A DNA stretch of 64,000 nt from Lepidodermella squamata (Eukaryota; Animalia; Gastrotricha), in NCBI GenBank assembly GCA_047495785.1, contig JBLDXI010000003.1, forward strand, positions 4,092,001-4,156,000, read 5' to 3'. Below the pieces are notes generated by a model, which was not told the DNA's origin, made no database searches, and worked only from the letters and a program-made list of their open reading frames with translations. The position numbers and the translations under genes are program-made. This document shows positions 1 to 20,200 of this stretch, one piece after another. How positions within the stretch are numbered: position 1 is the first letter of the stretch; every line of letters begins with the position of its first letter.

Positions 1-353
1 TCTAGAAATTTGTGATCGTCCGGAAGAATTACGATGTCTCTGGTAGATAGGCTAGCTTTAATAGCCATAGAACTGCCGATAGGTTCGATGCAGGGATTTA
101 AAATCATCGCTTTGGCCCCAGGCTGGATTTTCTCAAAAAATCGACCTTTTAAATCAGTGATGACCAATCGAAATACGACGTTGCCATTCGCGTCATCAAC
201 AAGAGTTGCGACTTGAAGAGGCTTGAAAGGATTCCTTGATCGCACTACAACACCAATGAATCTGACAATCAGCGATTTTTGAATAAAACTGAACCCTCTG
301 GCTTGATAGCCGAGGTTTGCAATGCTCTGCAAGCCGATGCTAGTGCTCTCCAT
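1..353 (-). CDS. TPR + SET domain protein, copy 0 (5' part only; truncated by window edge)
   Basis: Identical to the start of the 610-aa ORF (ATG at 353) except T>C at 334, which gives D7G. Confidence 0.85.
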   Translation of the reverse strand, partial: MESTSIGLQSIANLGYQARGFSFIQKSLIVRFIGVVVRSRNPFKPLQVATLVDDANGNVVFRLVITDLKGRFFEKIQPGAKAMILNPCIEPIGSSMAIKASLSTRDIVILPDDHKFL

Positions 354-505
354 TTTTTCAAATGTAAATTGAAGTGGCGAGTCGCGCTGCTTTTACACGC
401 AACTGGCGTGACTCATCTTACAAAATACGTCCAAAATGAATAATATACTCATTGATAAAGCACACGTTATTCTGTTTATTTCCCAAAGATAAGAAGGAAT
501 AATTC

Positions 506-819
506 CTAGGAAATCTGCTCTGCTGAGCACTTTGCCCATATCATTCCTTTTTGGGTCACTTCGGTCAGACTTGAGGCAGAAATTGCCAAGCAGCATTGCT
601 GGAAAGTATTTGCAGATTCGAATGTCTTGTTTTAGAAGAACAAATTTCCCAAATTCAATTGAAGAGAAGAAATTCAAGAATTTATTACCTCAGATGCATT
701 AGCGACCGCCAACGGAAAATTGATGCAGGAACGAGGGGAGCCACTTGCCACATAAGGACCGGGTGTTTTATTGACGAAGCAAACGCCCTGAACAGCATTG
801 TCTTTTCCCGCCATTCTAA
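506..819 (-). pseudogene. 5'-truncated duplicate of secreted Cys-rich gene A (3' half of exon 3, intron 3, exon 4); repeated at 3100-3413, 5694-6007, 8288-8601, 10882-11195
   Basis: Matches 13476-13789 of the intact gene and lacks exons 1-2 (signal peptide). It is fused at the junction to the 3' flank of the SET gene. Confidence 0.85.
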
Positions 820-1114
820 CGCATGTACCCAGAGAGCGTGTGTATTCTTTTGGAAAAATCTCAGCGATATGTGGTATCCGAAATGTACCCATTTGCCTTA
901 ATCGACTCTCGCATCCTCTTGAAAAGTGAGTTAATCTTCCAAATTGGGAGTGAAATTATTGTATTCTGTATGAATAGGCTGATTGAGAGGATAATGGCAT
1001 TTCTGTTAGAAAAAACCCAGCCGGTGAAACCAAAAATGTAAAAAATTATTTTATCAGTTTTTATTGCGAGCGTCATCGATTGCATTTCCTTTATAGTTAT
1101 TAATGTTGGCACAC

Positions 1115-2947
1115 TTATTCAGACATTAGTTTATCGAATAGCTTCGGGCTACCAGGCCAAATAAGTGTCAACTCGGCAAGTCGTGACGGCCACTGCTTGA
1201 AATGCTTCCGGCGCATGTTGCTGTCAAGGTGGCGGAAAAGCGTTGCAGGGAAAACGAGGGCTGCTTCTAGAGCATGGATTTTCATCAAAGCTTGATAGAA
1301 TTCTTCCATTAAAGCGGATGCTCGAAATAGTCCTCGATCGGTAGTTGCGAGACCTGAGCAGAGGCTAGGAATGATGTGAAGGGCGACAGGATTTAACTCT
1401 AAACATGGACGTATCCGGCATGCTTTCGCAAGTAATTCTTCCAAATGGCCCAAGTTTTGTTTTGAAAATTTCTTCGAGGCGGTTATCCTGTCAGCCGAGA
1501 GCTTGATCATGCTGAGAGCGGAAAGATTTGCGGCTGAATCTTTCCGATCCATTTCGCACAGGCGGCATCTGCATTCGAAGCCAAATTTCTCTCGCAGCGA
1601 CTTTTCCCTTGTCTGGAAGTCTTCGAAAGGTGTACAGTAGTCCCACAAGAGTTGTTCGCCTTTTCGAACTTTGCGAGTTACGCAGACAAATAAAAAGCGG
1701 CCGATGAAAGTTCGGCAGCAATTTGTGTCTACGCAGCTGTGATTTATATAGCTCGGCATTATCCAAAGTCCACAGCCATAGTTTCCTTTGTTATTAGCAA
1801 TATACGTCTCCATTGAAAGAGAATTGTGGTTGACGATAGCAGCTAGGGTTTCAGCGCCTTCATCCGTAAAGGGATCTCTGCTTTTCGACTCGATTTTCGC
1901 GCCACAATATAGCTTATAGAACTCCTCGGATATATCTGGTCGAGCGTCCAATTTTTCTATTACCGCTACAAGAAAATCTGCTGACTGACTCTCATCACAC
2001 GCAGAGTGAGGCTGAGGGAAATAGTTGAAAGCTCGCTCTGCTATTACCAAAGTCCCAGGTTCAATATCGGTTGTTGCGACTAGGCCTCGCCCATAACCAT
2101 CAATTTCCTCGATTTGAAGCATATTGCTTGCAAAGTAGTTGGCATGGTTGCTCAGCATAGGATCGCTTTTAGCCTCGTCGATCATTTTCATTTCATCGAA
2201 ATCTCCAGTAGTTGATTCTTTCAAGCCTCGCTCAGCCTGAGCCAAGAAAAGCTTTTCAAAACCTGGCTTCCCGCAGACGAGTTCGATACATTCTTGGTAT
2301 CGATCAAGTTTCATCAGCGAGCTAGCTTTCCGCAATAGAAGCTTTGGATTGCTAGGATCGATTTCCAGCCCTATTTCAGCATCTTTCAAAGCTTGAATTG
2401 GTCGGTCCATTGCAAGGAAAGCCGCTGATTTGTTCACCAAGATTTTTACTATGGCGTCGTTGTCAGAATTTCCAGCTAGCTGTTGAGCTCTTTCGAAACA
2501 GGCTATCGCCAACTCGAATTCACTTGTTTTGTAGAAGCCAACGCCGAGTGAGTTGAAGTTGATTGCATCAATAGATCTATGCCATTCTATTCCTTCTAGA
2601 AATTTGTGATCGTCCGGAAGAATTACGATGTCTCTGGTAGATAGGCTAGCTTTAATAGCCATAGAACTGCCGATAGGTTCGATGCAGGGATTTAAAATCA
2701 TCGCTTTGGCCCCAGGCTGGATTTTCTCAAAAAATCGACCTTTTAAATCAGTGATGACCAATCGAAATACGACGTTGCCATTCGCGTCATCAACAAGAGT
2801 TGCGACTTGAAGAGGCTTGAAAGGATTCCTTGATCGCACTACAACACCAATGAATCTGACAATCAGCGATTTTTGAATAAAACTGAACCCTCTGGCTTGA
2901 TAGCCGAGGTTTGCAATGCTCTGCAAGTCGATGCTAGTGCTCTCCAT
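1115..2947 (-). CDS. Intronless TPR + SET/post-SET putative protein-lysine methyltransferase, copy 1 (C422)
   Basis: 610 aa. TPR helices (NSLGVGFYKTSEFELAIACFERA; NKSAAFLAMDRPIQALKDAE; KLLLRKASSLMKLDRYQEC), SET motifs GYGRGLVAT, SYINHSC and KGEQLLWDY, post-SET FGFECRCRLC. AATAAA on the minus strand at 1060-1065. Confidence 0.9.
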   Translation of the reverse strand: MESTSIDLQSIANLGYQARGFSFIQKSLIVRFIGVVVRSRNPFKPLQVATLVDDANGNVVFRLVITDLKGRFFEKIQPGAKAMILNPCIEPIGSSMAIKASLSTRDIVILPDDHKFLEGIEWHRSIDAINFNSLGVGFYKTSEFELAIACFERAQQLAGNSDNDAIVKILVNKSAAFLAMDRPIQALKDAEIGLEIDPSNPKLLLRKASSLMKLDRYQECIELVCGKPGFEKLFLAQAERGLKESTTGDFDEMKMIDEAKSDPMLSNHANYFASNMLQIEEIDGYGRGLVATTDIEPGTLVIAERAFNYFPQPHSACDESQSADFLVAVIEKLDARPDISEEFYKLYCGAKIESKSRDPFTDEGAETLAAIVNHNSLSMETYIANNKGNYGCGLWIMPSYINHSCVDTNCCRTFIGRFLFVCVTRKVRKGEQLLWDYCTPFEDFQTREKSLREKFGFECRCRLCEMDRKDSAANLSALSMIKLSADRITASKKFSKQNLGHLEELLAKACRIRPCLELNPVALHIIPSLCSGLATTDRGLFRASALMEEFYQALMKIHALEAALVFPATLFRHLDSNMRRKHFKQWPSRLAELTLIWPGSPKLFDKLMSE

Positions 2948-3708
2948 TTTTTCAAATGTAAATTGAAGTGGCGAGTCGCGCTGCTTTTACACGCAACTGG
3001 CGTGACTCATCTTACAAAATACGTCCAAAATGAATAATATACTCATTGATAAAGCACACGTTATTCTGTTTATTTCCCAAAGATAAGAAGGAATAATTCC
3101 TAGGAAATCTGCTCTGCTGAGCACTTTGCCCATATCATTCCTTTTTGGGTCACTTCGGTTAGACTTGATGCAGAAATTGCCAAGCAGCATTGCTGGAAAG
3201 TATTTGCAGATTCGAATGTCTTGTTTTAGAAGAACAAATTTCCCAAATTCAATTGAAGAGAAGAAATTCAAGAATTTATTACCTCAGATGCATTAGCGAC
3301 CGCCAACGGAAAATTGATGCAGGAACGAGGGGAGCCACTTGCCACATAAGGACCGGGTGTTTTATTGACGAAGCAAACGCCCTGAACAGCATTGTCTTTT
3401 CCCGCCATTCTAACGCATGTACCCAGAGAGCGTGTGTATTCTTTTGGAAAAATCTCAGCGATATGTGGTATCCGAAATGTACCCATTTGCCTTAATCGAC
3501 TCTCGCATCCTCTTGAAAAGTGAGTTAATCTTCCAAATTGGGAGTGAAATTATTGTATTCTGTATGAATAGGCTGATTGAGAGGATAATGGCATTTCTGT
3601 TAGAAAAAACCCAGCCGGTGAAACCAAAAATGTAAAAAATTATTTTATCAGTTTTTATTGCGAGCGTCATCGATTGCATTTCCTTTATAGTTATTAATGT
3701 TGGCACAC

Positions 3709-5541
3709 TTATTCAGACATTAGTTTATCGAATAGCTTCGGGCTACCAGGCCAAATAAGTGTCAACTCGGCAAGTCGTGACGGCCACTGCTTGAAATGCT
3801 TCCGGCGCATGTTGCTGTCAAGGTGGCGGAAAAGCGTTGCAGGGAAAACGAGGGCTGCTTCTAGAGCATGGATTTTCATCAAAGCTTGATAGAATTCTTC
3901 CATTAAAGCGGATGCTCGAAATAGTCCTCGATCGGTAGTTGCGAGACCTGAGCAGAGGCTAGGAATGATGTGAAGGGCGACAGGATTTAACTCTAAACAT
4001 GGACGTATCCGGCATGCTTTCGCAAGTAATTCTTCCAAATGGCCCAAGTTTTGTTTTGAAAATTTCTTCGAGGCGGTTATCCTGTCAGCCGAGAGCTTGA
4101 TCATGCTGAGAGCGGAAAGATTTGCGGCTGAATCTTTCCGATCCATTTCGCACAGGCGGCATCTGCATTCGAAGCCAAATTTCTCTCGCAGCGACTTTTC
4201 CCTTGTCTGGAAGTCTTCGAAAGGTGTACAGTAGTCCCACAAGAGTTGTTCGCCTTTTCGAACTTTGCGAGTTACGCGGACAAATAAAAAGCGGCCGATG
4301 AAAGTTCGGCAGCAATTTGTGTCTACGCAGCTGTGATTTATATAGCTCGGCATTATCCAAAGTCCACAGCCATAGTTTCCTTTGTTATTAGCAATATACG
4401 TCTCCATTGAAAGAGAATTGTGGTTGACGATAGCAGCTAGGGTTTCAGCGCCTTCATCCGTAAAGGGATCTCTGCTTTTCGACTCGATTTTCGCGCCACA
4501 ATATAGCTTATAGAACTCCTCGGATATATCTGGTCGAGCGTCCAATTTTTCTATTACCGCTACAAGAAAATCTGCTGACTGACTCTCATCACACGCAGAG
4601 TGAGGCTGAGGGAAATAGTTGAAAGCTCGCTCTGCTATTACCAAAGTCCCAGGTTCAATATCGGTTGTTGCGACTAGGCCTCGCCCATAACCATCAATTT
4701 CCTCGATTTGAAGCATATTGCTTGCAAAGTAGTTGGCATGGTTGCTCAGCATAGGATCGCTTTTAGCCTCGTCGATCATTTTCATTTCATCGAAATCTCC
4801 AGTAGTTGATTCTTTCAAGCCTCGCTCAGCCTGAGCCAAGAAAAGCTTTTCAAAACCTGGCTTCCCGCAGACGAGTTCGATACATTCTTGGTATCGATCA
4901 AGTTTCATCAGCGAGCTAGCTTTCCGCAATAGAAGCTTTGGATTGCTAGGATCGATTTCCAGCCCTATTTCAGCATCTTTCAAAGCTTGAATTGGTCGGT
5001 CCATTGCAAGGAAAGCCGCTGATTTGTTCACCAAGATTTTTACTATGGCGTCGTTGTCAGAATTTCCAGCTAGCTGTTGAGCTCTTTCGAAACAGGCTAT
5101 CGCCAACTCGAATTCACTTGTTTTGTAGAAGCCAACGCCGAGTGAGTTGAAGTTGATTGCATCAATAGATCTATGCCATTCTATTCCTTCTAGAAATTTG
5201 TGATCGTCCGGAAGAATTACGATGTCTCTGGTAGATAGGCTAGCTTTAATAGCCATAGAACTGCCGATAGGTTCGATGCAGGGATTTAAAATCATCGCTT
5301 TGGCCCCAGGCTGGATTTTCTCAAAAAATCGACCTTTTAAATCAGTGATGACCAATCGAAATACGACGTTGCCATTCGCGTCATCAACAAGAGTTGCGAC
5401 TTGAAGAGGCTTGAAAGGATTCCTTGATCGCACTACAACACCAATGAATCTGACAATCAGCGATTTTTGAATAAAACTGAACCCTCTGGCTTGATAGCCG
5501 AGGTTTGCAATGCTCTGCAAGTCGATGCTAGTGCTCTCCAT
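3709..5541 (-). CDS. TPR + SET domain protein, copy 2 (R422)
   Basis: Same 610-aa ORF as copy 1 with C422R. Confidence 0.9.
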   Translation of the reverse strand: MESTSIDLQSIANLGYQARGFSFIQKSLIVRFIGVVVRSRNPFKPLQVATLVDDANGNVVFRLVITDLKGRFFEKIQPGAKAMILNPCIEPIGSSMAIKASLSTRDIVILPDDHKFLEGIEWHRSIDAINFNSLGVGFYKTSEFELAIACFERAQQLAGNSDNDAIVKILVNKSAAFLAMDRPIQALKDAEIGLEIDPSNPKLLLRKASSLMKLDRYQECIELVCGKPGFEKLFLAQAERGLKESTTGDFDEMKMIDEAKSDPMLSNHANYFASNMLQIEEIDGYGRGLVATTDIEPGTLVIAERAFNYFPQPHSACDESQSADFLVAVIEKLDARPDISEEFYKLYCGAKIESKSRDPFTDEGAETLAAIVNHNSLSMETYIANNKGNYGCGLWIMPSYINHSCVDTNCCRTFIGRFLFVRVTRKVRKGEQLLWDYCTPFEDFQTREKSLREKFGFECRCRLCEMDRKDSAANLSALSMIKLSADRITASKKFSKQNLGHLEELLAKACRIRPCLELNPVALHIIPSLCSGLATTDRGLFRASALMEEFYQALMKIHALEAALVFPATLFRHLDSNMRRKHFKQWPSRLAELTLIWPGSPKLFDKLMSE

Positions 5542-6302
5542 TTTTTCAAATGTAAATTGAAGTGGCGAGTCGCGCTGCTTTTACACGCAACTGGCGTGAC
5601 TCATCTTACAAAATACGTCCAAAATGAATAATATACTCATTGATAAAGCACACGTTATTCTGTTTATTTCCCAAAGATAAGAAGGAATAATTCCTAGGAA
5701 ATCTGCTCTGCTGAGCACTTTGCCCATATCATTCCTTTTTGGGTCACTTCGGTCAGACTTGAGGCAGAAATTGCCAAGCAGCATTGCTGGAAAGTATTTG
5801 CAGATTCGAATGTCTTGTTTTAGAAGAACAAATTTCCCAAATTCAATTGAAGAGAAGAAATTCAAGAATTTATTACCTCAGATGCATTAGCGACCGCCAA
5901 CGGAAAATTGATGCAGGAACGAGGGGAGCCACTTGCCACATAAGGACCGGGTGTTTTATTGACGAAGCAAACGCCCTGAACAGCATTGTCTTTTCCCGCC
6001 ATTCTAACGCATGTACCCAGAGAGCGTGTGTATTCTTTTGGAAAAATCTCAGCGATATGTGGTATCCGAAATGTACCCATTTGCCTTAATCGACTCTCGC
6101 ATCCTCTTGAAAAGTGAGTTAATCTTCCAAATTGGGAGTGAAATTATTGTATTCTGTATGAATAGGCTGATTGAGAGGATAATGGCATTTCTGTTAGAAA
6201 AAACCCAGCCGGTGAAACCAAAAATGTAAAAAATTATTTTATCAGTTTTTATTGCGAGCGTCATCGATTGCATTTCCTTTATAGTTATTAATGTTGGCAC
6301 AC

Positions 6303-8135
6303 TTATTCAGACATTAGTTTATCGAATAGCTTCGGGCTACCAGGCCAAATAAGTGTCAACTCGGCAAGTCGTGACGGCCACTGCTTGAAATGCTTCCGGC
6401 GCATGTTGCTGTCAAGGTGGCGGAAAAGCGTTGCAGGGAAAACGAGGGCTGCTTCTAGAGCATGGATTTTCATCAAAGCTTGATAGAATTCTTCCATTAA
6501 AGCGGATGCTCGAAATAGTCCTCGATCGGTAGTTGCGAGACCTGAGCAGAGGCTAGGAATGATGTGAAGGGCGACAGGATTTAACTCTAAACATGGACGT
6601 ATCCGGCATGCTTTCGCAAGTAATTCTTCCAAATGGCCCAAGTTTTGTTTTGAAAATTTCTTCGAGGCGGTTATCCTGTCAGCCGAGAGCTTGATCATGC
6701 TGAGAGCGGAAAGATTTGCGGCTGAATCTTTCCGATCCATTTCGCACAGGCGGCATCTGCATTCGAAGCCAAATTTCTCTCGCAGCGACTTTTCCCTTGT
6801 CTGGAAGTCTTCGAAAGGTGTACAGTAGTCCCACAAGAGTTGTTCGCCTTTTCGAACTTTGCGAGTTACGCAGACAAATAAAAAGCGGCCGATGAAAGTT
6901 CGGCAGCAATTTGTGTCTACGCAGCTGTGATTTATATAGCTCGGCATTATCCAAAGTCCACAGCCATAGTTTCCTTTGTTATTAGCAATATACGTCTCCA
7001 TTGAAAGAGAATTGTGGTTGACGATAGCAGCTAGGGTTTCAGCGCCTTCATCCGTAAAGGGATCTCTGCTTTTCGACTCGATTTTCGCGCCACAATATAG
7101 CTTATAGAACTCCTCGGATATATCTGGTCGAGCGTCCAATTTTTCTATTACCGCTACAAGAAAATCTGCTGACTGACTCTCATCACACGCAGAGTGAGGC
7201 TGAGGGAAATAGTTGAAAGCTCGCTCTGCTATTACCAAAGTCCCAGGTTCAATATCGGTTGTTGCGACTAGGCCTCGCCCATAACCATCAATTTCCTCGA
7301 TTTGAAGCATATTGCTTGCAAAGTAGTTGGCATGGTTGCTCAGCATAGGATCGCTTTTAGCCTCGTCGATCATTTTCATTTCATCGAAATCTCCAGTAGT
7401 TGATTCTTTCAAGCCTCGCTCAGCCTGAGCCAAGAAAAGCTTTTCAAAACCTGGCTTCCCGCAGACGAGTTCGATACATTCTTGGTATCGATCAAGTTTC
7501 ATCAGCGAGCTAGCTTTCCGCAATAGAAGCTTTGGATTGCTAGGATCGATTTCCAGCCCTATTTCAGCATCTTTCAAAGCTTGAATTGGTCGGTCCATTG
7601 CAAGGAAAGCCGCTGATTTGTTCACCAAGATTTTTACTATGGCGTCGTTGTCAGAATTTCCAGCTAGCTGTTGAGCTCTTTCGAAACAGGCTATCGCCAA
7701 CTCGAATTCACTTGTTTTGTAGAAGCCAACGCCGAGTGAGTTGAAGTTGATTGCATCAATAGATCTATGCCATTCTATTCCTTCTAGAAATTTGTGATCG
7801 TCCGGAAGAATTACGATGTCTCTGGTAGATAGGCTAGCTTTAATAGCCATAGAACTGCCGATAGGTTCGATGCAGGGATTTAAAATCATCGCTTTGGCCC
7901 CAGGCTGGATTTTCTCAAAAAATCGACCTTTTAAATCAGTGATGACCAATCGAAATACGACGTTGCCATTCGCGTCATCAACAAGAGTTGCGACTTGAAG
8001 AGGCTTGAAAGGATTCCTTGATCGCACTACAACACCAATGAATCTGACAATCAGCGATTTTTGAATAAAACTGAACCCTCTGGCTTGATAGCCGAGGTTT
8101 GCAATGCTCTGCAAGTCGATGCTAGTGCTCTCCAT
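6303..8135 (-). CDS. TPR + SET domain protein, copy 3 (C422)
   Basis: Same 610-aa ORF as copy 1. Confidence 0.9.
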   Translation of the reverse strand: MESTSIDLQSIANLGYQARGFSFIQKSLIVRFIGVVVRSRNPFKPLQVATLVDDANGNVVFRLVITDLKGRFFEKIQPGAKAMILNPCIEPIGSSMAIKASLSTRDIVILPDDHKFLEGIEWHRSIDAINFNSLGVGFYKTSEFELAIACFERAQQLAGNSDNDAIVKILVNKSAAFLAMDRPIQALKDAEIGLEIDPSNPKLLLRKASSLMKLDRYQECIELVCGKPGFEKLFLAQAERGLKESTTGDFDEMKMIDEAKSDPMLSNHANYFASNMLQIEEIDGYGRGLVATTDIEPGTLVIAERAFNYFPQPHSACDESQSADFLVAVIEKLDARPDISEEFYKLYCGAKIESKSRDPFTDEGAETLAAIVNHNSLSMETYIANNKGNYGCGLWIMPSYINHSCVDTNCCRTFIGRFLFVCVTRKVRKGEQLLWDYCTPFEDFQTREKSLREKFGFECRCRLCEMDRKDSAANLSALSMIKLSADRITASKKFSKQNLGHLEELLAKACRIRPCLELNPVALHIIPSLCSGLATTDRGLFRASALMEEFYQALMKIHALEAALVFPATLFRHLDSNMRRKHFKQWPSRLAELTLIWPGSPKLFDKLMSE

Positions 8136-8896
8136 TTTTTCAAATGTAAATTGAAGTGGCGAGTCGCGCTGCTTTTACACGCAACTGGCGTGACTCATCT
8201 TACAAAATACGTCCAAAATGAATAATATACTCATTGATAAAGCACACGTTATTCTGTTTATTTCCCAAAGATAAGAAGGAATAATTCCTAGGAAATCTGC
8301 TCTGCTGAGCACTTTGCCCATATCATTCCTTTTTGGGTCACTTCGGTCAGACTTGAGGCAGAAATTGCCAAGCAGCATTGCTGGAAAGTATTTGCAGATT
8401 CGAATGTCTTGTTTTAGAAGAACAAATTTCCCAAATTCAATTGAAGAGAAGAAATTCAAGAATTTATTACCTCAGATGCATTAGCGACCGCCAACGGAAA
8501 ATTGATGCAGGAACGAGGGGAGCCACTTGCCACATAAGGACCGGGTGTTTTATTGACGAAGCAAACGCCCTGAACAGCATTGTCTTTTCCCGCCATTCTA
8601 ACGCATGTACCCAGAGAGCGTGTGTATTCTTTTGGAAAAATCTCAGCGATATGTGGTATCCGAAATGTACCCATTTGCCTTAATCGACTCTCGCATCCTC
8701 TTGAAAAGTGAGTTAATCTTCCAAATTGGGAGTGAAATTATTGTATTCTGTATGAATAGGCTGATTGAGAGGATAATGGCATTTCTGTTAGAAAAAACCC
8801 AGCCGGTGAAACCAAAAATGTAAAAAATTATTTTATCAGTTTTTATTGCGAGCGTCATCGATTGCATTTCCTTTATAGTTATTAATGTTGGCACAC

Positions 8897-10729
8897 TTAT
8901 TCAGACATTAGTTTATCGAATAGCTTCGGGCTACCAGGCCAAATAAGTGTCAACTCGGCAAGTCGTGACGGCCACTGCTTGAAATGCTTCCGGCGCATGT
9001 TGCTGTCAAGGTGGCGGAAAAGCGTTGCAGGGAAAACGAGGGCTGCTTCTAGAGCATGGATTTTCATCAAAGCTTGATAGAATTCTTCCATTAAAGCGGA
9101 TGCTCGAAATAGTCCTCGATCGGTAGTTGCGAGACCTGAGCAGAGGCTAGGAATGATGTGAAGGGCGACAGGATTTAACTCTAAACATGGACGTATCCGG
9201 CATGCTTTCGCAAGTAATTCTTCCAAATGGCCCAAGTTTTGTTTTGAAAATTTCTTCGAGGCGGTTATCCTGTCAGCCGAGAGCTTGATCATGCTGAGAG
9301 CGGAAAGATTTGCGGCTGAATCTTTCCGATCCATTTCGCACAGGCGGCATCTGCATTCGAAGCCAAATTTCTCTCGCAGCGACTTTTCCCTTGTCTGGAA
9401 GTCTTCGAAAGGTGTACAGTAGTCCCACAAGAGTTGTTCGCCTTTTCGAACTTTGCGAGTTACGCGGACAAATAAAAAGCGGCCGATGAAAGTTCGGCAG
9501 CAATTTGTGTCTACGCAGCTGTGATTTATATAGCTCGGCATTATCCAAAGTCCACAGCCATAGTTTCCTTTGTTATTAGCAATATACGTCTCCATTGAAA
9601 GAGAATTGTGGTTGACGATAGCAGCTAGGGTTTCAGCGCCTTCATCCGTAAAGGGATCTCTGCTTTTCGACTCGATTTTCGCGCCACAATATAGCTTATA
9701 GAACTCCTCGGATATATCTGGTCGAGCGTCCAATTTTTCTATTACCGCTACAAGAAAATCTGCTGACTGACTCTCATCACACGCAGAGTGAGGCTGAGGG
9801 AAATAGTTGAAAGCTCGCTCTGCTATTACCAAAGTCCCAGGTTCAATATCGGTTGTTGCGACTAGGCCTCGCCCATAACCATCAATTTCCTCGATTTGAA
9901 GCATATTGCTTGCAAAGTAGTTGGCATGGTTGCTCAGCATAGGATCGCTTTTAGCCTCGTCGATCATTTTCATTTCATCGAAATCTCCAGTAGTTGATTC
10001 TTTCAAGCCTCGCTCAGCCTGAGCCAAGAAAAGCTTTTCAAAACCTGGCTTCCCGCAGACGAGTTCGATACATTCTTGGTATCGATCAAGTTTCATCAGC
10101 GAGCTAGCTTTCCGCAATAGAAGCTTTGGATTGCTAGGATCGATTTCCAGCCCTATTTCAGCATCTTTCAAAGCTTGAATTGGTCGGTCCATTGCAAGGA
10201 AAGCCGCTGATTTGTTCACCAAGATTTTTACTATGGCGTCGTTGTCAGAATTTCCAGCTAGCTGTTGAGCTCTTTCGAAACAGGCTATCGCCAACTCGAA
10301 TTCACTTGTTTTGTAGAAGCCAACGCCGAGTGAGTTGAAGTTGATTGCATCAATAGATCTATGCCATTCTATTCCTTCTAGAAATTTGTGATCGTCCGGA
10401 AGAATTACGATGTCTCTGGTAGATAGGCTAGCTTTAATAGCCATAGAACTGCCGATAGGTTCGATGCAGGGATTTAAAATCATCGCTTTGGCCCCAGGCT
10501 GGATTTTCTCAAAAAATCGACCTTTTAAATCAGTGATGACCAATCGAAATACGACGTTGCCATTCGCGTCATCAACAAGAGTTGCGACTTGAAGAGGCTT
10601 GAAAGGATTCCTTGATCGCACTACAACACCAATGAATCTGACAATCAGCGATTTTTGAATAAAACTGAACCCTCTGGCTTGATAGCCGAGGTTTGCAATG
10701 CTCTGCAAGTCGATGCTAGTGCTCTCCAT
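8897..10729 (-). CDS. TPR + SET domain protein, copy 4 (R422)
   Basis: Same 610-aa ORF with C422R. Confidence 0.9.
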   Translation of the reverse strand: MESTSIDLQSIANLGYQARGFSFIQKSLIVRFIGVVVRSRNPFKPLQVATLVDDANGNVVFRLVITDLKGRFFEKIQPGAKAMILNPCIEPIGSSMAIKASLSTRDIVILPDDHKFLEGIEWHRSIDAINFNSLGVGFYKTSEFELAIACFERAQQLAGNSDNDAIVKILVNKSAAFLAMDRPIQALKDAEIGLEIDPSNPKLLLRKASSLMKLDRYQECIELVCGKPGFEKLFLAQAERGLKESTTGDFDEMKMIDEAKSDPMLSNHANYFASNMLQIEEIDGYGRGLVATTDIEPGTLVIAERAFNYFPQPHSACDESQSADFLVAVIEKLDARPDISEEFYKLYCGAKIESKSRDPFTDEGAETLAAIVNHNSLSMETYIANNKGNYGCGLWIMPSYINHSCVDTNCCRTFIGRFLFVRVTRKVRKGEQLLWDYCTPFEDFQTREKSLREKFGFECRCRLCEMDRKDSAANLSALSMIKLSADRITASKKFSKQNLGHLEELLAKACRIRPCLELNPVALHIIPSLCSGLATTDRGLFRASALMEEFYQALMKIHALEAALVFPATLFRHLDSNMRRKHFKQWPSRLAELTLIWPGSPKLFDKLMSE

Positions 10730-11490
10730 TTTTTCAAATGTAAATTGAAGTGGCGAGTCGCGCTGCTTTTACACGCAACTGGCGTGACTCATCTTACAAA
10801 ATACGTCCAAAATGAATAATATACTCATTGATAAAGCACACGTTATTCTGTTTATTTCCCAAAGATAAGAAGGAATAATTCCTAGGAAATCTGCTCTGCT
10901 GAGCACTTTGCCCATATCATTCCTTTTTGGGTCACTTCGGTCAGACTTGAGGCAGAAATTGCCAAGCAGCATTGCTGGAAAGTATTTGCAGATTCGAATG
11001 TCTTGTTTTAGAAGAACAAATTTCCCAAATTCAATTGAAGAGAAGAAATTCAAGAATTTATTACCTCAGATGCATTAGCGACCGCCAACGGAAAATTGAT
11101 GCAGGAACGAGGGGAGCCACTTGCCACATAAGGACCGGGTGTTTTATTGACGAAGCAAACGCCCTGAACAGCATTGTCTTTTCCCGCCATTCTAACGCAT
11201 GTACCCAGAGAGCGTGTGTATTCTTTTGGAAAAATCTCAGCGATATGTGGTATCCGAAATGTACCCATTTGCCTTAATCGACTCTCGCATCCTCTTGAAA
11301 AGTGAGTTAATCTTCCAAATTGGGAGTGAAATTATTGTATTCTGTATGAATAGGCTGATTGAGAGGATAATGGCATTTCTGTTAGAAAAAACCCAGCCGG
11401 TGAAACCAAAAATGTAAAAAATTATTTTATCAGTTTTTATTGCGAGCGTCATCGATTGCATTTCCTTTATAGTTATTAATGTTGGCACAC

Positions 11491-13323
11491 TTATTCAGAC
11501 ATTAGTTTATCGAATAGCTTCGGGCTACCAGGCCAAATAAGTGTCAACTCGGCAAGTCGTGACGGCCACTGCTTGAAATGCTTCCGGCGCATGTTGCTGT
11601 CAAGGTGGCGGAAAAGCGTTGCAGGGAAAACGAGGGCTGCTTCTAGAGCATGGATTTTCATCAAAGCTTGATAGAATTCTTCCATTAAAGCGGATGCTCG
11701 AAATAGTCCTCGATCGGTAGTTGCGAGACCTGAGCAGAGGCTAGGAATGATGTGAAGGGCGACAGGATTTAACTCTAAACATGGACGTATCCGGCATGCT
11801 TTCGCAAGTAATTCTTCCAAATGGCCCAAGTTTTGTTTTGAAAATTTCTTCGAGGCGGTTATCCTGTCAGCCGAGAGCTTGATCATGCTGAGAGCGGAAA
11901 GATTTGCGGCTGAATCTTTCCGATCCATTTCGCACAGGCGGCATCTGCATTCGAAGCCAAATTTCTCTCGCAGCGACTTTTCCCTTGTCTGGAAGTCTTC
12001 GAAAGGTGTACAGTAGTCCCACAAGAGTTGTTCGCCTTTTCGAACTTTGCGAGTTACGCGGACAAATAAAAAGCGGCCGATGAAAGTTCGGCAGCAATTT
12101 GTGTCTACGCAGCTGTGATTTATATAGCTCGGCATTATCCAAAGTCCACAGCCATAGTTTCCTTTGTTATTAGCAATATACGTCTCCATTGAAAGAGAAT
12201 TGTGGTTGACGATAGCAGCTAGGGTTTCAGCGCCTTCATCCGTAAAGGGATCTCTGCTTTTCGACTCGATTTTCGCGCCACAATATAGCTTATAGAACTC
12301 CTCGGATATATCTGGTCGAGCGTCCAATTTTTCTATTACCGCTACAAGAAAATCTGCTGACTGACTCTCATCACACGCAGAGTGAGGCTGAGGGAAATAG
12401 TTGAAAGCTCGCTCTGCTATTACCAAAGTCCCAGGTTCAATATCGGTTGTTGCGACTAGGCCTCGCCCATAACCATCAATTTCCTCGATTTGAAGCATAT
12501 TGCTTGCAAAGTAGTTGGCATGGTTGCTCAGCATAGGATCGCTTTTAGCCTCGTCGATCATTTTCATTTCATCGAAATCTCCAGTAGTTGATTCTTTCAA
12601 GCCTCGCTCAGCCTGAGCCAAGAAAAGCTTTTCAAAACCTGGCTTCCCGCAGACGAGTTCGATACATTCTTGGTATCGATCAAGTTTCATCAGCGAGCTA
12701 GCTTTCCGCAATAGAAGCTTTGGATTGCTAGGATCGATTTCCAGCCCTATTTCAGCATCTTTCAAAGCTTGAATTGGTCGGTCCATTGCAAGGAAAGCCG
12801 CTGATTTGTTCACCAAGATTTTTACTATGGCGTCGTTGTCAGAATTTCCAGCTAGCTGTTGAGCTCTTTCGAAACAGGCTATCGCCAACTCGAATTCACT
12901 TGTTTTGTAGAAGCCAACGCCGAGTGAGTTGAAGTTGATTGCATCAATAGATCTATGCCATTCTATTCCTTCTAGAAATTTGTGATCGTCCGGAAGAATT
13001 ACGATGTCTCTGGTAGATAGGCTAGCTTTAATAGCCATAGAACTGCCGATAGGTTCGATGCAGGGATTTAAAATCATCGCTTTGGCCCCAGGCTGGATTT
13101 TCTCAAAAAATCGACCTTTTAAATCAGTGATGACCAATCGAAATACGACGTTGCCATTCGCGTCATCAACAAGAGTTGCGACTTGAAGAGGCTTGAAAGG
13201 ATTCCTTGATCGCACTACAACACCAATGAATCTGACAATCAGCGATTTTTGAATAAAACTGAACCCTCTGGCTTGATAGCCGAGGTTTGCAATGCTCTGC
13301 AAGTCGATGCTAGTGCTCTCCAT
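11491..13323 (-). CDS. TPR + SET domain protein, copy 5 (R422), terminal copy next to unique sequence
   Basis: Same 610-aa ORF. Its ATG lies 152 bp downstream of the stop of secreted gene A. Confidence 0.9.
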   Translation of the reverse strand: MESTSIDLQSIANLGYQARGFSFIQKSLIVRFIGVVVRSRNPFKPLQVATLVDDANGNVVFRLVITDLKGRFFEKIQPGAKAMILNPCIEPIGSSMAIKASLSTRDIVILPDDHKFLEGIEWHRSIDAINFNSLGVGFYKTSEFELAIACFERAQQLAGNSDNDAIVKILVNKSAAFLAMDRPIQALKDAEIGLEIDPSNPKLLLRKASSLMKLDRYQECIELVCGKPGFEKLFLAQAERGLKESTTGDFDEMKMIDEAKSDPMLSNHANYFASNMLQIEEIDGYGRGLVATTDIEPGTLVIAERAFNYFPQPHSACDESQSADFLVAVIEKLDARPDISEEFYKLYCGAKIESKSRDPFTDEGAETLAAIVNHNSLSMETYIANNKGNYGCGLWIMPSYINHSCVDTNCCRTFIGRFLFVRVTRKVRKGEQLLWDYCTPFEDFQTREKSLREKFGFECRCRLCEMDRKDSAANLSALSMIKLSADRITASKKFSKQNLGHLEELLAKACRIRPCLELNPVALHIIPSLCSGLATTDRGLFRASALMEEFYQALMKIHALEAALVFPATLFRHLDSNMRRKHFKQWPSRLAELTLIWPGSPKLFDKLMSE

Positions 13324-13475
13324 TTTTTCAAATGTAAATTGAAGTGGCGAGTCGCGCTGCTTTTACACGCAACTGGCGTGACTCATCTTACAAAATACGT
13401 CCAAAATGAATAATATACTCATTGATAAAGCACACGTTATTCTGTTTATTTCCCAAAGATAAGAAGGAATAATTC

Positions 13476-14229
13476 CTAGGAAATCTGCTCTGCTGAGCAC
13501 TTTGCCCATATCATTCCTTTTTGGGTCACTTCGGTTAGACTTGATGCAGAAATTGCCAAGCAGCATTGCTGGAAAGTATTTGCAGATTCGAATGTCTTGT
13601 TTTAGAAGAACAAATTTCCCAAATTCAATTGAAGAGAAGAAATTCAAGAATTTATTACCTCAGATGCATTAGCGACCGCCAACGGAAAATTGATGCAGGA
13701 ACGAGGGGAGCCACTTGCCACATAAGGACCGGGTGTTTTATTGACGAAGCAAACGCCCTGAACAGCATTGTCTTTTCCAGCCATTCTAATCATATTGTAA
13801 TTTAGCACGTCTTTACTTTGAACTTTCAAGCTAGCACAACAAGCGTCGAAGCTCACAAACTGTCCAACAGGCCCCTTCTATAAACATAGAGAGGAGGGGT
13901 ATTAGGATTTTTGTAAAATTTCCTAAAGCAAGGATCTCACCAGGTCGGCATCTATACCAGTGCAATTGCCACTTGTAGTGCAGAACGAAAATGACCCTAC
14001 GAATAGTTGCGGCGATGAAGTAAAGCTGCACGTTTGAAACTGCGTTCATCTCAATTAAATAGGCTGCGGCATAAGTTGGAAACAATTATTTTACCGATCC
14101 CGCTGCTGTGGTGTCCGCCGCCGGGGGCATCTTCCCGCTTCCACTCATGTCTCCCCCGAGACAAGCATCCGACGAACGTGAAAGCAAGGTTAAACTGAAG
14201 AACGTTATTACAAGAACCTGACTTGCCAT
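13476..14229 (-). CDS. Secreted cysteine-rich protein A, 4 exons, 190 aa, unknown family
   Basis: Exons 14229-14095, 14039-13941, 13877-13659, 13595-13476, all phase-0 GT-AG. Protein MASQVLVITFFSLTLLSRSSDACLGG...FQTCSFTSSPQLFVGSFSFCTTSGNCTGID...SFDACC...QGVCFVN...SCINFP...TFQQCCLAIS...MIWAKCSAEQIS*. Signal-peptide-like N-terminus; AATAAA at 13445-13450. Confidence 0.85.
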
Positions 14230-15581: not shown

Positions 15582-16748
15582 ATGGAGAAGTTCACAAATC
15601 TGGTTGCATGTTTGTTGGTCATCTGGACATTGTACGCAACGTGTCAGCAATCAGCTGAGAAATGTTCGGAAATCTTCTCAGACATTCATATATCGTCAAA
15701 TAACCAGCCAGCAACTGGATACTATGAAAAATGTCTGCAATTTGCGTCGCTAAGCTTTCGGATTTTCAGTATAGTTGTCGATAGCTCCTGCAACGTACCA
15801 TCGCCCGCCTTAAATCGCGAGTGTTCCCGCCTCCGAGCCACTGGGTATAAATTCAAGGCCTGCCGCGATGGCGGTGTCGATTGCGATCCTGATCTACCTC
15901 AACATTATTTTCAGACACTTTGCTCCATAGTCTCAACTGTAGCGAGGACTCCGAACATTTGCAGAGATCGTCGCAGATTTCAATTGCTGCAAAATTATTC
16001 GAGTCTTGCTAAGGATGCATGCAATGATATTTGTCTATCAAAAACCCCAGGCCTGTTACGGAGAAGAAGATCTTGGATCTTCACGACACCGTCTTATCAG
16101 ATAAATAATTGCGAAAACGAACTTTTGCCTGCGATGAATTCAGCTGTTGACCTGATTGGATATTGGTACTGTCCTAATTTCAATGGCCAACTCAACAGAC
16201 TTTGCATGGCAACTGGCCGCAATATTTTGGTCGATTTCTCGAACATTGACATGCCAGTACCATATTTGGGCCTTCAATACGTTACATGCCGCTTACATCC
16301 AGCAATGAATAGCAGCGCTGGCAATATGATGCTCCTTAATTTATTTCAGCTGACTTGTTTTACGATCCTCAACTCAATTAAGCCGATCAACAACGCCGCC
16401 ATATCAAAAATTTGCTCTTCAAATGGAACAGTGATCAATCCACATACTACTACAACCCCGGTCGGGCCAGTTCCTGTTACTACGTTACCTATGAGAACTT
16501 ACCCATTGCCTGATTTAACAGGGAATAATTATTGCGAAATTCCAGCGTTGCCCTTAAATGCGAGGTTCGATTTCATTTCCAACCTTTGCGATAACAGAAT
16601 GCGGACGTGTGAATGGTTGGGTTCACTTAGGATAACTTGTGATCAGGGCTATCAACCAATCCCTGCATCTCGTAAGCTTCAAATTTACTGCATTAGTGCC
16701 AGTGATGGTTCGTTGAAGTGGGACTCGGCTTGGCCAGCATGTCAATAA
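15582..16748 (+). CDS. Secreted Cys-rich protein with Thr/Pro linker and C-terminal Sushi/CCP-like domain, 388 aa, single exon
   Basis: Hydrophobic N-terminus, many Cys, basic cleavage-like sites (RDRRR, RRRR). The C-terminal CEIPALPLNA...ITCDQGY...YC...WDSAWPAC fits the Sushi C-C-C-W-C pattern. Confidence 0.75.
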   Translation: MEKFTNLVACLLVIWTLYATCQQSAEKCSEIFSDIHISSNNQPATGYYEKCLQFASLSFRIFSIVVDSSCNVPSPALNRECSRLRATGYKFKACRDGGVDCDPDLPQHYFQTLCSIVSTVARTPNICRDRRRFQLLQNYSSLAKDACNDICLSKTPGLLRRRRSWIFTTPSYQINNCENELLPAMNSAVDLIGYWYCPNFNGQLNRLCMATGRNILVDFSNIDMPVPYLGLQYVTCRLHPAMNSSAGNMMLLNLFQLTCFTILNSIKPINNAAISKICSSNGTVINPHTTTTPVGPVPVTTLPMRTYPLPDLTGNNYCEIPALPLNARFDFISNLCDNRMRTCEWLGSLRITCDQGYQPIPASRKLQIYCISASDGSLKWDSAWPACQ

Positions 16749-17206: not shown

Positions 17207-20200
17207 TTATACTTTCACAGCACTAAATGCGATGTTAAAGCCTCGATGTGTTTGCCGTCCGGTTGATCTCGAATAAAAGGCGATGGCTACCCGCCGGCCG
17301 GTGGTTGTGAACACGGCCTTTGGATCAGTCGGCCGTGGGGTACCGCAGAGGGTGGCGATGAGGGTGTCAGGCGAGTTCGTTTGCGAGTCATGATCGTCGT
17401 AAATTTGCAAATGATCACCTGTACAATCAGCGCTCCACGCAAGGTCAAAGTCCAATAAAGTCAATCTAAACACAAAAAATTTGAGATTTTTTTAACAAAA
17501 GAATGGGCTATTAATTATACCTGACACCGGTAAAACCAAGAGGAGCTTCGATCTGCCAGAAACACGAGTCCTGGCTTGGATACGGTAGTGATCTGTCATA
17601 GCCAGGGCTCATGATGGTACCCTGCATTGTTGATACATAGACGAACGACTGGCCATTACACCGAGCCGCTGTGCTGCTCGTCGTAGTCCGCGGCTGGGTG
17701 GGCGGCATTGTCGGCGGTGGGGTAGGCGCTTCGGTCGATGGCGGTTCAGTTTCAGTCTGAGTGGTCGTCGGCCGTGGGGTTCTCCTCGTGGTTGTAGTAC
17801 TAGTAGTACGCGGCGCTTCAGTTGTCCTAACCTGCTCTGTAGTCACATCTCGCGGCTGCAAATTGCCGCCTTGATTCCTCGGCGTTGTTGGCGCAAGAAT
17901 AGCGACGATTTGTTGCCATTGCGTCAGGTCCCAGTACATGTCTTGGTTGACGAGCGGGCTGTTGGCGAGCAGTGCTGCGGTTTCGGCATCGACCGGTACG
18001 TAAGGATTGCCGGGGATGCAAAAGCCCATGCCTTGGTGCATGACGCATCGATAATTTGGCGGGCAGGGATTGGCACGCTGGCAAGACGATGGTGTAGCTA
18101 CAAAACAGACAATTAAAATCACATCAAAATCATCATTGAAAGAATCACTCACTTGGCGGTAAAGTTCTGTCATAAGGCGATCTTGTTGATGAGGCAATGA
18201 TCGGCAGCCTCCTGACAATTGACTCGTCAGGACTCTCCATATCCTCCATTGGGGCAATCGGACCCTCTGTAAACACAAAAAAATCAATTAATGGCTCGTA
18301 AAAGCGAGAATTTTCACTGACCATTCGGTGATAGAACTTTGACTATTGCGTGGAAGTAAGCTTCTGGTTTCGTTGTACTGGTAATGAATGTGATTAGGAC
18401 GTTCGGGCCTGTTGATACGATGGTGTCTGGAATCCAAGTTCCGCAAACTCTAAGCAGCCGCTTATCGTTAGCTGAAGGCCCGTCGTAGACAGCCAACGCA
18501 TCAGCTCGACACTGAGCGCTGCCGTGAAGCATGAAATCGACGAAAGTAATTTGTATCCGAGTGTCCTATTTTTAGAATTTTACGATTAAACTCTCAAAGC
18601 CGTGGGAAAAAACTAACGATTGGCGATGAAATAAGCCAGTTACATTGGTCGGTTTTCGCTACTGTTGAAGTGCCAATTCTCTCCATTTGGCCGCGATTCA
18701 ATTGAAGAACAAAGTAACGACCTTCGCAACGACCGTCTGTTGTTGGCTCGATGTCATTTCCAGCTTTAGGCGTTGTAGTAACATTAATTCGCCGTTGCGT
18801 AACGAAATCTTCGCTTGTAGCTGGAAAAATCAGGGAAAATTCTTTAAATTCTTTCCTAAAAGCTGAAACAACTTACGAGTAAATGAATAGTAGGCAGCGA
18901 AGCCTTTAGAATTAGTCGCAAGATCACGAGAAATGAATCGGATCGCGAGATAACGACTGCTGCTCGTAATCGGGCCCGGGACTTCATTTCTAGATCCGCC
19001 ACACAGCAGGGCTATCCTCGACGCCTGCTCATTAGGGCCGTCGAAAATCTCCATGTAGTCATTCGGGCAAGACCTGTCTATCCCAGTCGTGCCAACGTTG
19101 AACGTTCGGAAGGCTAAGCGAACTCTTTGCAACGGTGTTGCCGCGGCTATTGTCCAGTAGCATTGGTCGTTTGTCGCGTAAGCTCCGGCGTCAAAGCCGG
19201 GTGAGAAAATTAATCCATTATTGTCATAAAGGAACGAGCGACGGCCAGCACACCGGCTACCACTCGCAGTTCCGACGGGCAACGACCGGTCAGCTAGTAC
19301 CGAGCTGGTACCGTCGAGTTGTTCGTAACGGATGCTGAAGCCAGTCGCCGAAATTCGGCTGTTTGTTTTGAACTTAAGGTAGGCAACACTTTTTGACAGA
19401 ACGATCGGGTCGAGATTTCGGCGACCGCATAGCGAGGCGACAATCGGCGCGGCTTCATCCGGGCCGTCGTAGACCAGAAGAGCATCACCCGACTGGCTGC
19501 AGTCCATGTTAGACTGAGCTACGTCGAACGCTTCGAAAATGAGGCGAACTTTGGTATTTTTCGAGCCGATAATTTGCCAATAGCACAAGTCAGTGTTTGG
19601 ATAATCGGCGATGCCGTAACGCGGCGAGCGGATGTAGCCTTGAATTGCGGTTAAAATGGTCGTTTGACCTCCGCAACGCTCAGTTGATGAGCTGTTAGTT
19701 AATTGAAGCTCATTGCCAAGTCCGCCGGGAATAAAATCTCGCAGTTCGTTGTCGGTTCCATCGCCTATCGCTGCATTATCACCGGCTTCCCAACGATCTA
19801 AAATGAGAAATTAATATAATTTTTGATCAGTTAATTCTGTGAAAAATAAACTTACGGACGAAGTTGTAATGAAATCGGAAACCAGGCTCTTGGACTGTTC
19901 CATCCGAAGAAAATTTGATGAACATTTCCGATCCGGTTGAGATGATATTTGGCGGAGGCGCCGAGCCGCAGTAACTGCCAAGCTGGGCCGAATTCGTACT
20001 ACTTCCGTCGTAAACGATGACTTTATCATTGGTGCACAAGTAACTGTCTTCCAATTTGAAATTTTCGGACGAAATCCTACAATTAAATCGATTTAATGAG
20101 GAAAAATGACTATAATGAATTGACGCTAACCTGATTCGAGCAGACGATGGAGCAATAATTTTCCTAATTCAAATTGAAACAATTATTTCGAGCGAACTAG

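Follow-up and report, generated by a model that had tools for sequence, protein, structure and literature searches.

The window that we analyzed is a 64,000-nucleotide stretch of contig JBLDXI010000003.1 (C3) from Lepidodermella squamata; window base 1 is position 4,092,001 of C3. It opens inside a head-to-tail array of 2594-bp units, each with one complete methyltransferase gene. The array comprises 12 whole units and occupies 35.2 kb (C3:4070623-4105789): it starts 21,377 bases (21.4 kb) upstream of window base 1 and ends at window base 13789. The first-pass annotation had described a tandem amplification of a SET-domain gene in at least six copies. This was correct; since the array runs past the edge of the window, the count was a minimum. 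The features are as follows (window positions, unless marked C3):

1 to 13789, no strand: window part (5.3 units) of the 12-unit array, with a period of 2594 and 99.6-100% identity
1 to 353, minus strand: 5' part of gene copy 7 (first 353 nucleotides of the coding sequence), with the private change D7G; the full open reading frame is C3:4090524-4092353
334, no strand: variable site, D7G in copy 7
819/820, repeated at 3413/3414, 6007/6008, 8601/8602, and 11195/11196, plus six upstream of the window: internal unit junction, ...CCATTCTAA joined to CGCATGTACC...
1060 to 1065, minus strand: AATAAA, 50 nucleotides past the stop codon, within the 295-bp 3' flank of every unit
1115 to 2947, minus strand: gene copy 8, intact 610-amino-acid OB-like/TPR/SET open reading frame, Cys422 isoform
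3709 to 5541, minus strand: gene copy 9, intact 610-amino-acid open reading frame, majority isoform (Arg422)
6303 to 8135, minus strand: gene copy 10, intact 610-amino-acid open reading frame, Cys422 isoform
8897 to 10729, minus strand: gene copy 11, intact 610-amino-acid open reading frame, majority isoform
11491 to 13323, minus strand: gene copy 12 (the rightmost), intact 610-amino-acid open reading frame, majority isoform
13324 to 13789, minus strand: 466-bp 5' flank that precedes the ATG in every unit, a putative promoter
13779: unit position 809, A in the rightmost copy only and C in the 11 others, 11 bp from the boundary
13789/13790: right array boundary, ...CCATTCTAA followed by TCATATTG
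C3:4070627/4070628: left array boundary, ...GGGTCTAC followed by CGCATG

The 2594-bp head-to-tail arrangement is confirmed by a self-comparison of the window at an offset of 2594: identity is 99.6-100% per 500-bp block from window base 1 to 11195+2594 = 13789, and beyond window base 13789 it drops to about 25%. A repeat search of the window recovered six in-register copies at a spacing of 2594. (TRF did not call the array, simply because it handles periods of up to 500.) When we compared the unit by BLAST to C3:4002001-4156000 (154 kb), we found the 12 whole units and one interruption of about 4 kb of foreign DNA, which is a transposon. With the transposon taken out, 31,140 bp remain, equal to 12.00 units, and the array ends are in phase. 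There are no decayed units past either array boundary within these 154 kb.

The genome (121.2 Mb in 151 contigs) was searched with the protein and the 761-bp spacer as queries. A six-frame search found 12 open full-length copies, all on C3, and neither the unit nor the junction-bearing spacer occurs outside the array in the 121-Mb genome. The flanks of the array each occur once in the genome, and both array ends are anchored in this unique sequence. The locus is represented by one haplotype only in the assembly. The array sits among ordinary animal genes (a ROR-type receptor kinase, CUB, RFX, a pericentrin-like protein, an E2 acyltransferase, and a primase), and its GC content of 0.43 is the average base composition. 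The ROR-like kinase gene and a 388-amino-acid open reading frame lie on either side of the array. At 266-650 bp to the left of the array, and so away from the breakpoint, there is a dispersed repeat of about 380 bp.

Each unit consists of a 466-bp 5' flank, an intronless gene of 1833 bp, and a 295-bp 3' flank that contains a poly(A) signal. All 12 units have an open 610-amino-acid frame with intact catalytic motifs; the five full copies that had been reported as intact correspond to five ATG-initiated open reading frames on the minus strand of the window. The 12 copies encode four protein isoforms, with the differences D7G, E353K, and R422C. Exact-sequence look-ups of two of the isoforms gave no match in the public collections searched, in which records close to this genome may be hidden.

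A Helitron or another mobile unit that carries the gene was considered and rejected: there are no dispersed copies, and the unit, the spacer, and close copies of the protein are confined to the array. Also, the unit junction is not an end-to-end fusion of Helitron-type termini. As an argument for horizontal transfer or retroposition, the lack of introns carries little weight, because neighboring animal genes (RFX, 830 amino acids, and the pericentrin-like gene, 1196 amino acids) are also single open reading frames and because the paralogs are old.

The annotation of the gene as a SET-domain methyltransferase can be refined: Pfam, an alignment to SMYD3, and a fold match identify the predicted product as a SMYD-like SET enzyme without the MYND finger and with an N-terminal TPR. 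Pfam reports a SET domain (E 6e-12) as well as TPR. GYGRG, INHSC (residues 401-405), and the tyrosine of LLWDY align to the GxG, NHSC, and catalytic-tyrosine motifs of SMYD3, and the post-SET cysteine cluster FECRCRLC aligns to FECDCFRC of SMYD3. The structure model (pLDDT 84.8) has SMYD2/3 as its best fold matches (E 1e-10), with alignments of 420-440 columns against the 430-residue chains of SMYD2 and SMYD3; helices 444-609 of the model form a C-terminal helical domain. MYND has no Pfam match in the 610-amino-acid protein, and MYND-type cysteine-rich zinc-finger sequence is absent between the SET parts (about residues 315-388), where the model has helices and low-confidence loops. Like the SMYD proteins, the array protein has the GxG, NHSC, and catalytic tyrosine of the SET core, the post-SET cysteine cluster, the fold of the whole chain, and an expanded family. 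Unlike them, it has no MYND in the SET insert, and its SET domain is preceded by an additional beta domain at the N-terminus and by a TPR of three repeats.

At least 16 diverged paralogs are present in the genome, and the nearest are 34-40% identical. By sequence comparison, the protein belongs to an old family with a lineage-specific expansion; in arthropods, the SmydA expansions are lineage-specific growth of the SMYD family (PMC5459927, PMC4521844). The closest relatives by sequence, at 24-31% identity, come from fungi and plants and are TPR-SET proteins. A word search with the SET protein, aimed at the locus in related species, gave no relative above 31% identity, and the ROR-like flanking kinase had no relative above 33% identity, so no orthologous locus was located. 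A metagenome scan for a related locus gave no match.

The junctions in the window had been described as identical. All five are identical across the 35 bases compared, and all 11 internal junctions of the array are of one type. The two original ends have TCTA in common, shifted by one base relative to the join (a TCTA(A/C) microhomology). The flanks share no homology able to drive homologous recombination; they have no common stretch of more than 12 bp, which rules out recombination between flanking repeats as the origin of the array. A single founding rearrangement, as proposed in the first-pass annotation, is supported by the single junction type, by the in-phase ends (12.00 units), and by the absence of this junction elsewhere in the genome.

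The leftmost copy alone is without GCGT at unit positions 836-839, at a distance of 17-20 bp from the left boundary. Besides this difference and the one at unit position 809, the two edge copies have no private variants. Raised mutation density close to structural-variant junctions has been documented (PMC4937565, PMC5413072), and both variants may reflect error-prone formation of the junction. Alternatively, gene conversion may reach the outermost bases poorly, or the assembler may have switched haplotypes at the array borders.

On average, the copies differ from each other at 0.16% of positions. In the window, the mismatches reduce to exactly five unit positions (334, 566, 575, 809, and 1684), just as had been counted by eye. 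Positions 566 and 575 are in the spacer, and 1684 corresponds to R422C. Five of the eight variant events are common to 2-4 copies each, in a mosaic: variant types are shared by non-adjacent copies, all four gametes (combinations) are present at sites 1684 and 566, and copy c03 is a recombinant of the two 912-1112 variant types. (We also considered that an imported allele might account for the 912-1112 variant block and rejected this; clustering was not significant in a scan statistic, with p=0.31 over the unit and p=0.87 within the spacer.) Two pairs of units are identical. Neighbors have a mean of 2.9 differences, versus 8 for copies that are 10-11 units apart, and the farther apart two copies lie in the array, the more they differ (Mantel r=0.45, p=0.008). 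Edge copies show no greater divergence than inner ones, with one private event each. Together with the mean difference of 0.16%, this supports the earlier view that the array is very young. There are 8 spacer variants versus 3 coding variants (p=0.004, or p=0.12 with linked sites counted once). The coding changes are non-synonymous in 3 of 3 cases, so any selection on the copies would be hypothetical.

The foreign DNA is 4018 bp long and splits the spacer of unit 7, with an ordinary unit junction 45 bp to its left. Its arms of 1251 bp are 100% complementary, and it is flanked by a 4-bp ATAT target duplication. Other copies on contigs C20, C25, C32, and C2 are 98-99% identical and have ATAT or ACAT duplications, and at least 40 matches to its termini are found in the genome. 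No Pfam domains were found in its open reading frames. These sequence features identify the insertion as a foldback-type non-autonomous DNA transposon. It is limited to unit 7 and has neither spread to other units nor been removed.

We think that this is probably a real chromosomal array of 12 copies, which arose by a non-homologous founder duplication, grew by repeated unequal exchange, and later received a transposon insertion. The junction suggests that one non-homologous duplication joined the right end (...TCTAA) to the left end (CGCATG...), via the 4-bp TCTA microhomology and one mismatched base. This step was probably based on replication or end joining, and probably error-prone, because the variants private to the edge copies are all close to the boundaries (11 and 17-20 bp away). 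As the variant pattern suggests, repeated unequal exchange between sister chromatids or homologs, with gene conversion, would then have taken the array from 2 to about 12 copies, and the few mutations that arose meanwhile would have been copied along. The last step can be seen directly: the foldback transposon entered the spacer of unit 7, without spread to other units.

Could the array have been created or inflated in vitro? phi29 turns circles into tandem concatemers, and concatemers of a small circle or of a single copy might have been stitched into the native locus. For the published L. squamata assembly, DNA of one animal was amplified with phi29 (PMC11660948); that assembly has 122 Mb in 157 contigs and a mean HiFi read of 13.4 kb. 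The assembly behind the array is close to it in size and contig number (121.2 Mb, 151 contigs) and is probably derived from such multiple-displacement-amplified DNA, so the copy number calls for confirmation at the level of reads. The exact number could be wrong because each half of the array (15.6 kb) exceeds the mean read length and because two unit pairs show no differences. That all of the junctions are identical, and that some units are identical to one another, would also fit an artifact. However, units copied from a single circle would not differ from one another, while the units seen here are a mosaic with at least 8 variant events and a distance gradient. Real molecules of this structure are needed to explain the transposon, which has a regular 4-bp target duplication and long runs of units on either side and lies 45 bp from an ordinary junction. 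Also, both ends of the array are anchored in unique flank, and the authors of the L. squamata assembly found no chimeric contig (PMC11660948). Overall, we consider an artifact to be quite unlikely.

Two other histories would put the array in the living animal. A 2594-bp extrachromosomal circle might have undergone rolling-circle replication, and the concatemer might have re-integrated at the native locus by homologous recombination. The first-pass annotation had offered this route alongside unequal crossing-over. Such a burst would be expected to leave a single junction type, a whole number of copies, and edges that look native, as seen here, and for the first expansion step it is compatible with the structure alone. 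But a single burst followed only by mutation predicts private variants only, whereas 5 of the 8 events are shared, all four gametes are present, and similarity decays with distance, so later exchange is needed in any case. There is also no second integration site or solo junction elsewhere in the genome. Unequal exchange is supported, then, and the burst is not supported as the sole cause; we consider it very improbable. The other history is an old array, or gene-bearing macrosatellite, that is held near-identical by continuous concerted evolution. High identity among copies gives no date, concerted evolution also yields mosaic variants and a distance gradient, and the gene lineage is itself old (the nearest paralog is 34-40% identical). 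However, the edge copies, which should be the least homogenized, differ from inner copies by just one private event each; no decayed units lie beyond the boundaries within the 154 kb; and the transposon in unit 7 was neither spread nor removed. Furthermore, the divergence of 0.16% among copies is about 18 times below the heterozygosity reported for L. squamata (2.99%; PMC11660948). There is only a small chance that the array is old.

If the recent amplification that we favor is confirmed on reads, the locus would be an unusually clean natural record of the birth of a gene array, in a little-studied animal phylum. The order of events could be reconstructed from one microhomology junction, two junction-proximal changes, a few dated variants, and the transposon as a landmark, and junction PCR or ddPCR would be a ready assay of copy-number variation in clonal animal cultures. 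If it fails on reads, the locus would be a useful warning example for assemblies from phi29-amplified DNA. If the 466-bp flank holds a promoter, the array would provide a putative ~12-fold dose of a SMYD-like, MYND-less TPR-SET methyltransferase. If confirmed, the array would also single out one member of an expanded, uncharacterized family of TPR-SET methyltransferases for functional work.

The founding step resembles duplications attributed to MMBIR/FoSTeS or theta-mediated end joining (PMC4937565, PMC5413072, PMC11790251), in that the junction has 4 bp of microhomology and no flanking repeats, and small mutations lie on either side of it within 20 bp. It differs in the probable later growth to 12 copies by homologous exchange, and the polarity of the two small changes needs an outgroup.

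As an array, it is similar to the CUP1 metallothionein array of Saccharomyces cerevisiae, in which a unit of about 2 kb, with a whole small gene and its own promoter, is repeated head-to-tail roughly 10-15 times. CUP1 has one junction type, its copy number shifts by unequal sister-chromatid exchange, and dose follows copy number. Experiments have linked CUP1 amplification to copper resistance, and strains are polymorphic for it. The two arrays share a kb-sized, whole-gene, head-to-tail unit, a single junction type, and a similar copy number; in contrast, the array described here has an animal host, contains a methyltransferase gene, and is known from the sequence of one assembly. By analogy, it might be a copy-number-variable amplification that is selectively favored because it raises the dose of a TPR-SET methyltransferase, a member of a family with few animal representatives, in a largely clonal freshwater gastrotrich lineage. 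Copy number and enzyme dose would then follow an environmental or genomic stress, in the manner of CUP1, with isoforms (R422C, in the SET core) already spreading within the array. We consider this unlikely.

The D4Z4/DUX4 macrosatellite also has kilobase tandem units with an intronless open reading frame in each, as does the gastrotrich array. D4Z4, however, is an old, heterochromatic, GC-rich repeat that mammals have conserved, whereas in the gastrotrich array the edges are undiverged, the base composition is average, and nothing points to great age. Ordinary tandem gene amplification is a known kind of event, and the array is probably a clean and recent example of it.

Within the window, each base was compared with the base 2594 positions on, and identity in blocks of 500 bp was 99.6-100% as far as base 11195. 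This periodicity ends at window position 13789, past which identity is ~25%. A repeat search identified six in-register copies in the window with a spacing of exactly 2594; TRF, which handles periods of 500 at most, missed the array for that reason alone. The five unit junctions in the window are all identical, and five unit positions are variable (334, 566, 575, 809, and 1684, counted in the 2594-bp period from window base 1). The window also has five 610-aa ORFs, all on the minus strand. The first-pass annotation, which was made from the sequence alone, described all of this accurately, and its estimate of at least six copies rises to 12 once upstream DNA is added. In the 154 kb that we examined (the window and 90 kb upstream), BLAST of the unit placed the array at C3:4070623 to C3:4105789 (C3 is contig JBLDXI010000003.1). 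Without an inserted element, this is 31,140 bp, or 12.00 units, and the same search of the 154 kb found no further unit copies, whole or decayed, outside the array.

Across the genome (121.2 Mb in 151 contigs), a six-frame search found 12 open full-length copies of the gene, all inside the array, and no other close copy of the protein: all remaining matches of this search are 37% identical or less. The spacer around the junction (761 bp) was found nowhere else in the genome. The 1-kb flanks each occur once, except for a short dispersed repeat within the left flank. This repeat (~380 bp, C3:4069973-4070356) is not at the breakpoint but 266-650 bp to the left of the array, and dozens of copies, 75-97% identical, are spread over many contigs.

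Read in the direction of the gene (minus strand), the unit comprises 466 bp of 5' flank, a coding sequence of 1833 bp, and a 3' flank of 295 bp, in which AATAAA lies 50 nt past the stop codon. Because the junction falls in the spacer, no gene copy is truncated. With a slash at the breakpoint, the boundaries read:

Left array boundary: ...GGGTCTAC / CGCATG...
Right array boundary: ...CCATTCTAA / TCATATTG...
Internal junction: ...CCATTCTAA / CGCATG...

The sequences at the two original ends have TCTA in common, with a single mismatch at the next base. Between the flanks there is no homology above 12 bp, which rules out recombination between repeats as the founding event. Together, these features suggest that the founding duplication was non-homologous and microhomology-assisted. 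The single rearrangement that the first-pass annotation had proposed is supported by the one junction type throughout.

To the left of the array is a gene for a ROR-type receptor kinase (Fz, Kringle, and kinase domains). To the right are genes for CUB-domain proteins, an RFX factor, a pericentrin-like protein, an E2 acyltransferase, and the primase large subunit. Judging by these genes, the locus is ordinary animal chromatin and not a contaminant. Features near the array include:

Window 15582-16748, plus strand: 388-aa ORF with no Pfam match; it points away from the rightmost SET copy, with 2.26 kb of intergenic DNA between the two
Window 18830-21576, minus strand: two adjacent CUB-domain ORFs, probably exons or tandem genes of a CUB-domain protein
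Window 26093-28585, minus strand: RFX transcription factor gene, a single ORF of 830 aa, where local GC content is raised (0.556 vs. ~0.43 around it)
C3:4086255-4090272, upstream of the window: inserted element of 4018 bp, in the 3' flank of unit 7, 45 bp from the junction

The inserted element has terminal inverted repeats of 1251 bp that are 100% complementary, a centre of 1516 bp, and a 4-bp target duplication (ATAT). Copies on four other contigs (C20, C25, C32, and C2) are 98-99% identical, also have the termini CGATGATTTT..., and are flanked by target duplications of ATAT or ACAT. Genome-wide, its termini have at least 40 matches. We did not find any Pfam-recognisable ORF or transposase in the element, which is a foldback-type non-autonomous DNA transposon. 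Because several copies are 98-99% identical, the family has been active recently. Only one unit carries the transposon, with a run of about six units on either side.

Aligning the 12 copies (numbered from left to right) revealed 18 variable columns, or about 11 mutational events, in 8 patterns:

334C (D7G): private to copy 7
809A: private to copy 12
GCGT lost at 836-839: private to copy 1
912/913/939: shared by copies 1, 2, and 6
1089 and an ACTT indel at 1112: shared by copies 1, 2, 3, and 6
1891T (E353K): shared by copies 1 and 2
1684A (R422C): shared by copies 8 and 10
566C/575G: shared by copies 7, 9, 10, and 11

Copy 3 is a recombinant between the two 912-1112 types, and all four combinations occur at sites 1684 and 566. 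Pairs of copies differ by 4.3 events on average (0.16%) and by 10 at most. The mean is 2.9 events for neighbours vs. 8 for copies that are 10-11 units apart, and difference increases with distance along the array (Mantel r=0.45, permutation p=0.008). Copies 4 and 5 are identical, as are copies 9 and 11. This is the pattern expected of stepwise local unequal exchange with conversion. Eight events are in the spacer and three are in coding sequence (binomial p=0.004, or p=0.12 with linked sites counted once); all three coding changes alter the protein. Variants seem to cluster at 912-1112, but without statistical significance.

The outermost copies have just two private variants: 809, which is 11 bp from the right boundary, and 836-839, which is 17-20 bp from the left boundary. 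If variants were placed at random in the 761-bp spacer, we calculate that both would lie within 20 bp of a boundary with a probability of ~7e-4. On the simplest interpretation, two small changes arose at the founder junction as it formed, and all 11 internal junctions inherited both. Mutation density is raised near structural-variant junctions and microhomology-mediated joins (PMC4937565, PMC5413072). Alternatively, the last bases of an edge copy might be out of reach of gene conversion, or the assembler might have switched haplotypes at the array borders.

An old array that is kept homogeneous by concerted evolution would also have similar copies, but we consider this unlikely. The edge copies are no more diverged than the inner ones, decayed copies are absent outside the array, and the transposon has neither been homogenised into other units nor out of unit 7. 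Also, the divergence of 0.16% is far below the heterozygosity of 2.99% that is reported for Lepidodermella squamata (PMC11660948). These observations favour a young array, in keeping with the "very recent" amplification of the first-pass annotation. Invertebrate mutation rates are a few per billion sites per generation, so 0.16% would correspond to on the order of 10^5 generations. The amplification is recent in evolutionary terms, yet it is not a somatic or one-generation event.

Because phi29 turns circles into tandem concatemers, an amplification or assembly artefact deserves some weight. The published assembly of Lepidodermella squamata (122 Mb, 157 contigs) was made from phi29 multiple-displacement-amplified DNA from a single animal (PMC11660948). 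We still think that an artefact is improbable, given the mosaic of variants, their gradient with distance, and the unique anchors at both ends of the array. Furthermore, the transposon sits in a single unit and has an ordinary junction 45 bp to its left; a concatemer made in vitro would carry no such landmark. The exact copy number is less secure, because the half-arrays (15.6 kb) are longer than the mean HiFi read (13.4 kb; PMC11660948) and because of the identical copies. The first-pass annotation had suggested expansion by unequal crossing-over or by a rolling circle. The mosaic and the gradient support unequal exchange; a single rolling-circle burst followed by mutation would not yield shared, mosaic, distance-graded variants, and we rate it as quite improbable. 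Overall, this is probably a genuine young amplification to 12 tandem copies: one microhomology-mediated duplication would have founded the array, and repeated unequal exchange would have raised the copy number.

The amplified gene had been described as a SET-domain methyltransferase. Pfam supports this (SET at 286-437, E 6e-12) and adds TPRs at 132-195, which are similar to those of TOM70, RPAP3, and SGT1. Among solved structures, the best match by sequence is SMYD3 (E 1e-9), and the alignment includes INHSC, the catalytic Tyr of LLWDY, and the post-SET cluster FECRCRLC. An AlphaFold model, built with an alignment of 21 family members (mean pLDDT 84.8, pTM 0.80), has an N-terminal beta domain (~1-110), TPR helices (131-259), the SET core, and a C-terminal helical domain. 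In a Foldseek search, the top matches are SMYD3, SMYD2, and SMYD1 (E 1e-10 to 6e-9), followed by SETD3 and Toxoplasma AKMT. We predict that the protein acts like a SMYD-type protein lysine methyltransferase, but it is not a canonical SMYD because it lacks the MYND finger. It is an undescribed MYND-less TPR-SET relative of the SMYDs. R422C falls in a beta strand of the core, at a position that is Arg in SMYD3 as well, and E353K is in a low-confidence loop of the model.

The genome contains at least 16 further paralogues, and the open frames of the family, which has at least 16 members, measure 460-690 aa. The closest one to the array gene (C48:940555-942324, about 37-40% identity) has one in-frame TAA and is possibly a pseudogene or two ORFs. 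Several paralogues are grouped in old local clusters, each with two to three TPR-SET genes that are diverged and intronless:

C29:1520500-1530499
C19:1562500-1570000
C54:1485500-1495499

No paralogue exceeds 44% identity to its nearest relative, and the terminal branches measure ~1 change per site, so the family consists of old duplications and one young burst, with nothing between. Outside this genome, the closest relatives are fungal and plant TPR-SET proteins (24-31% identity). The lack of introns is weak evidence for horizontal transfer or retroposition, because the neighbouring animal genes are also single ORFs.

As an event, the array is a fresh example of a well-known kind of amplification, and it can be compared with yeast CUP1 and with gene-bearing macrosatellites.
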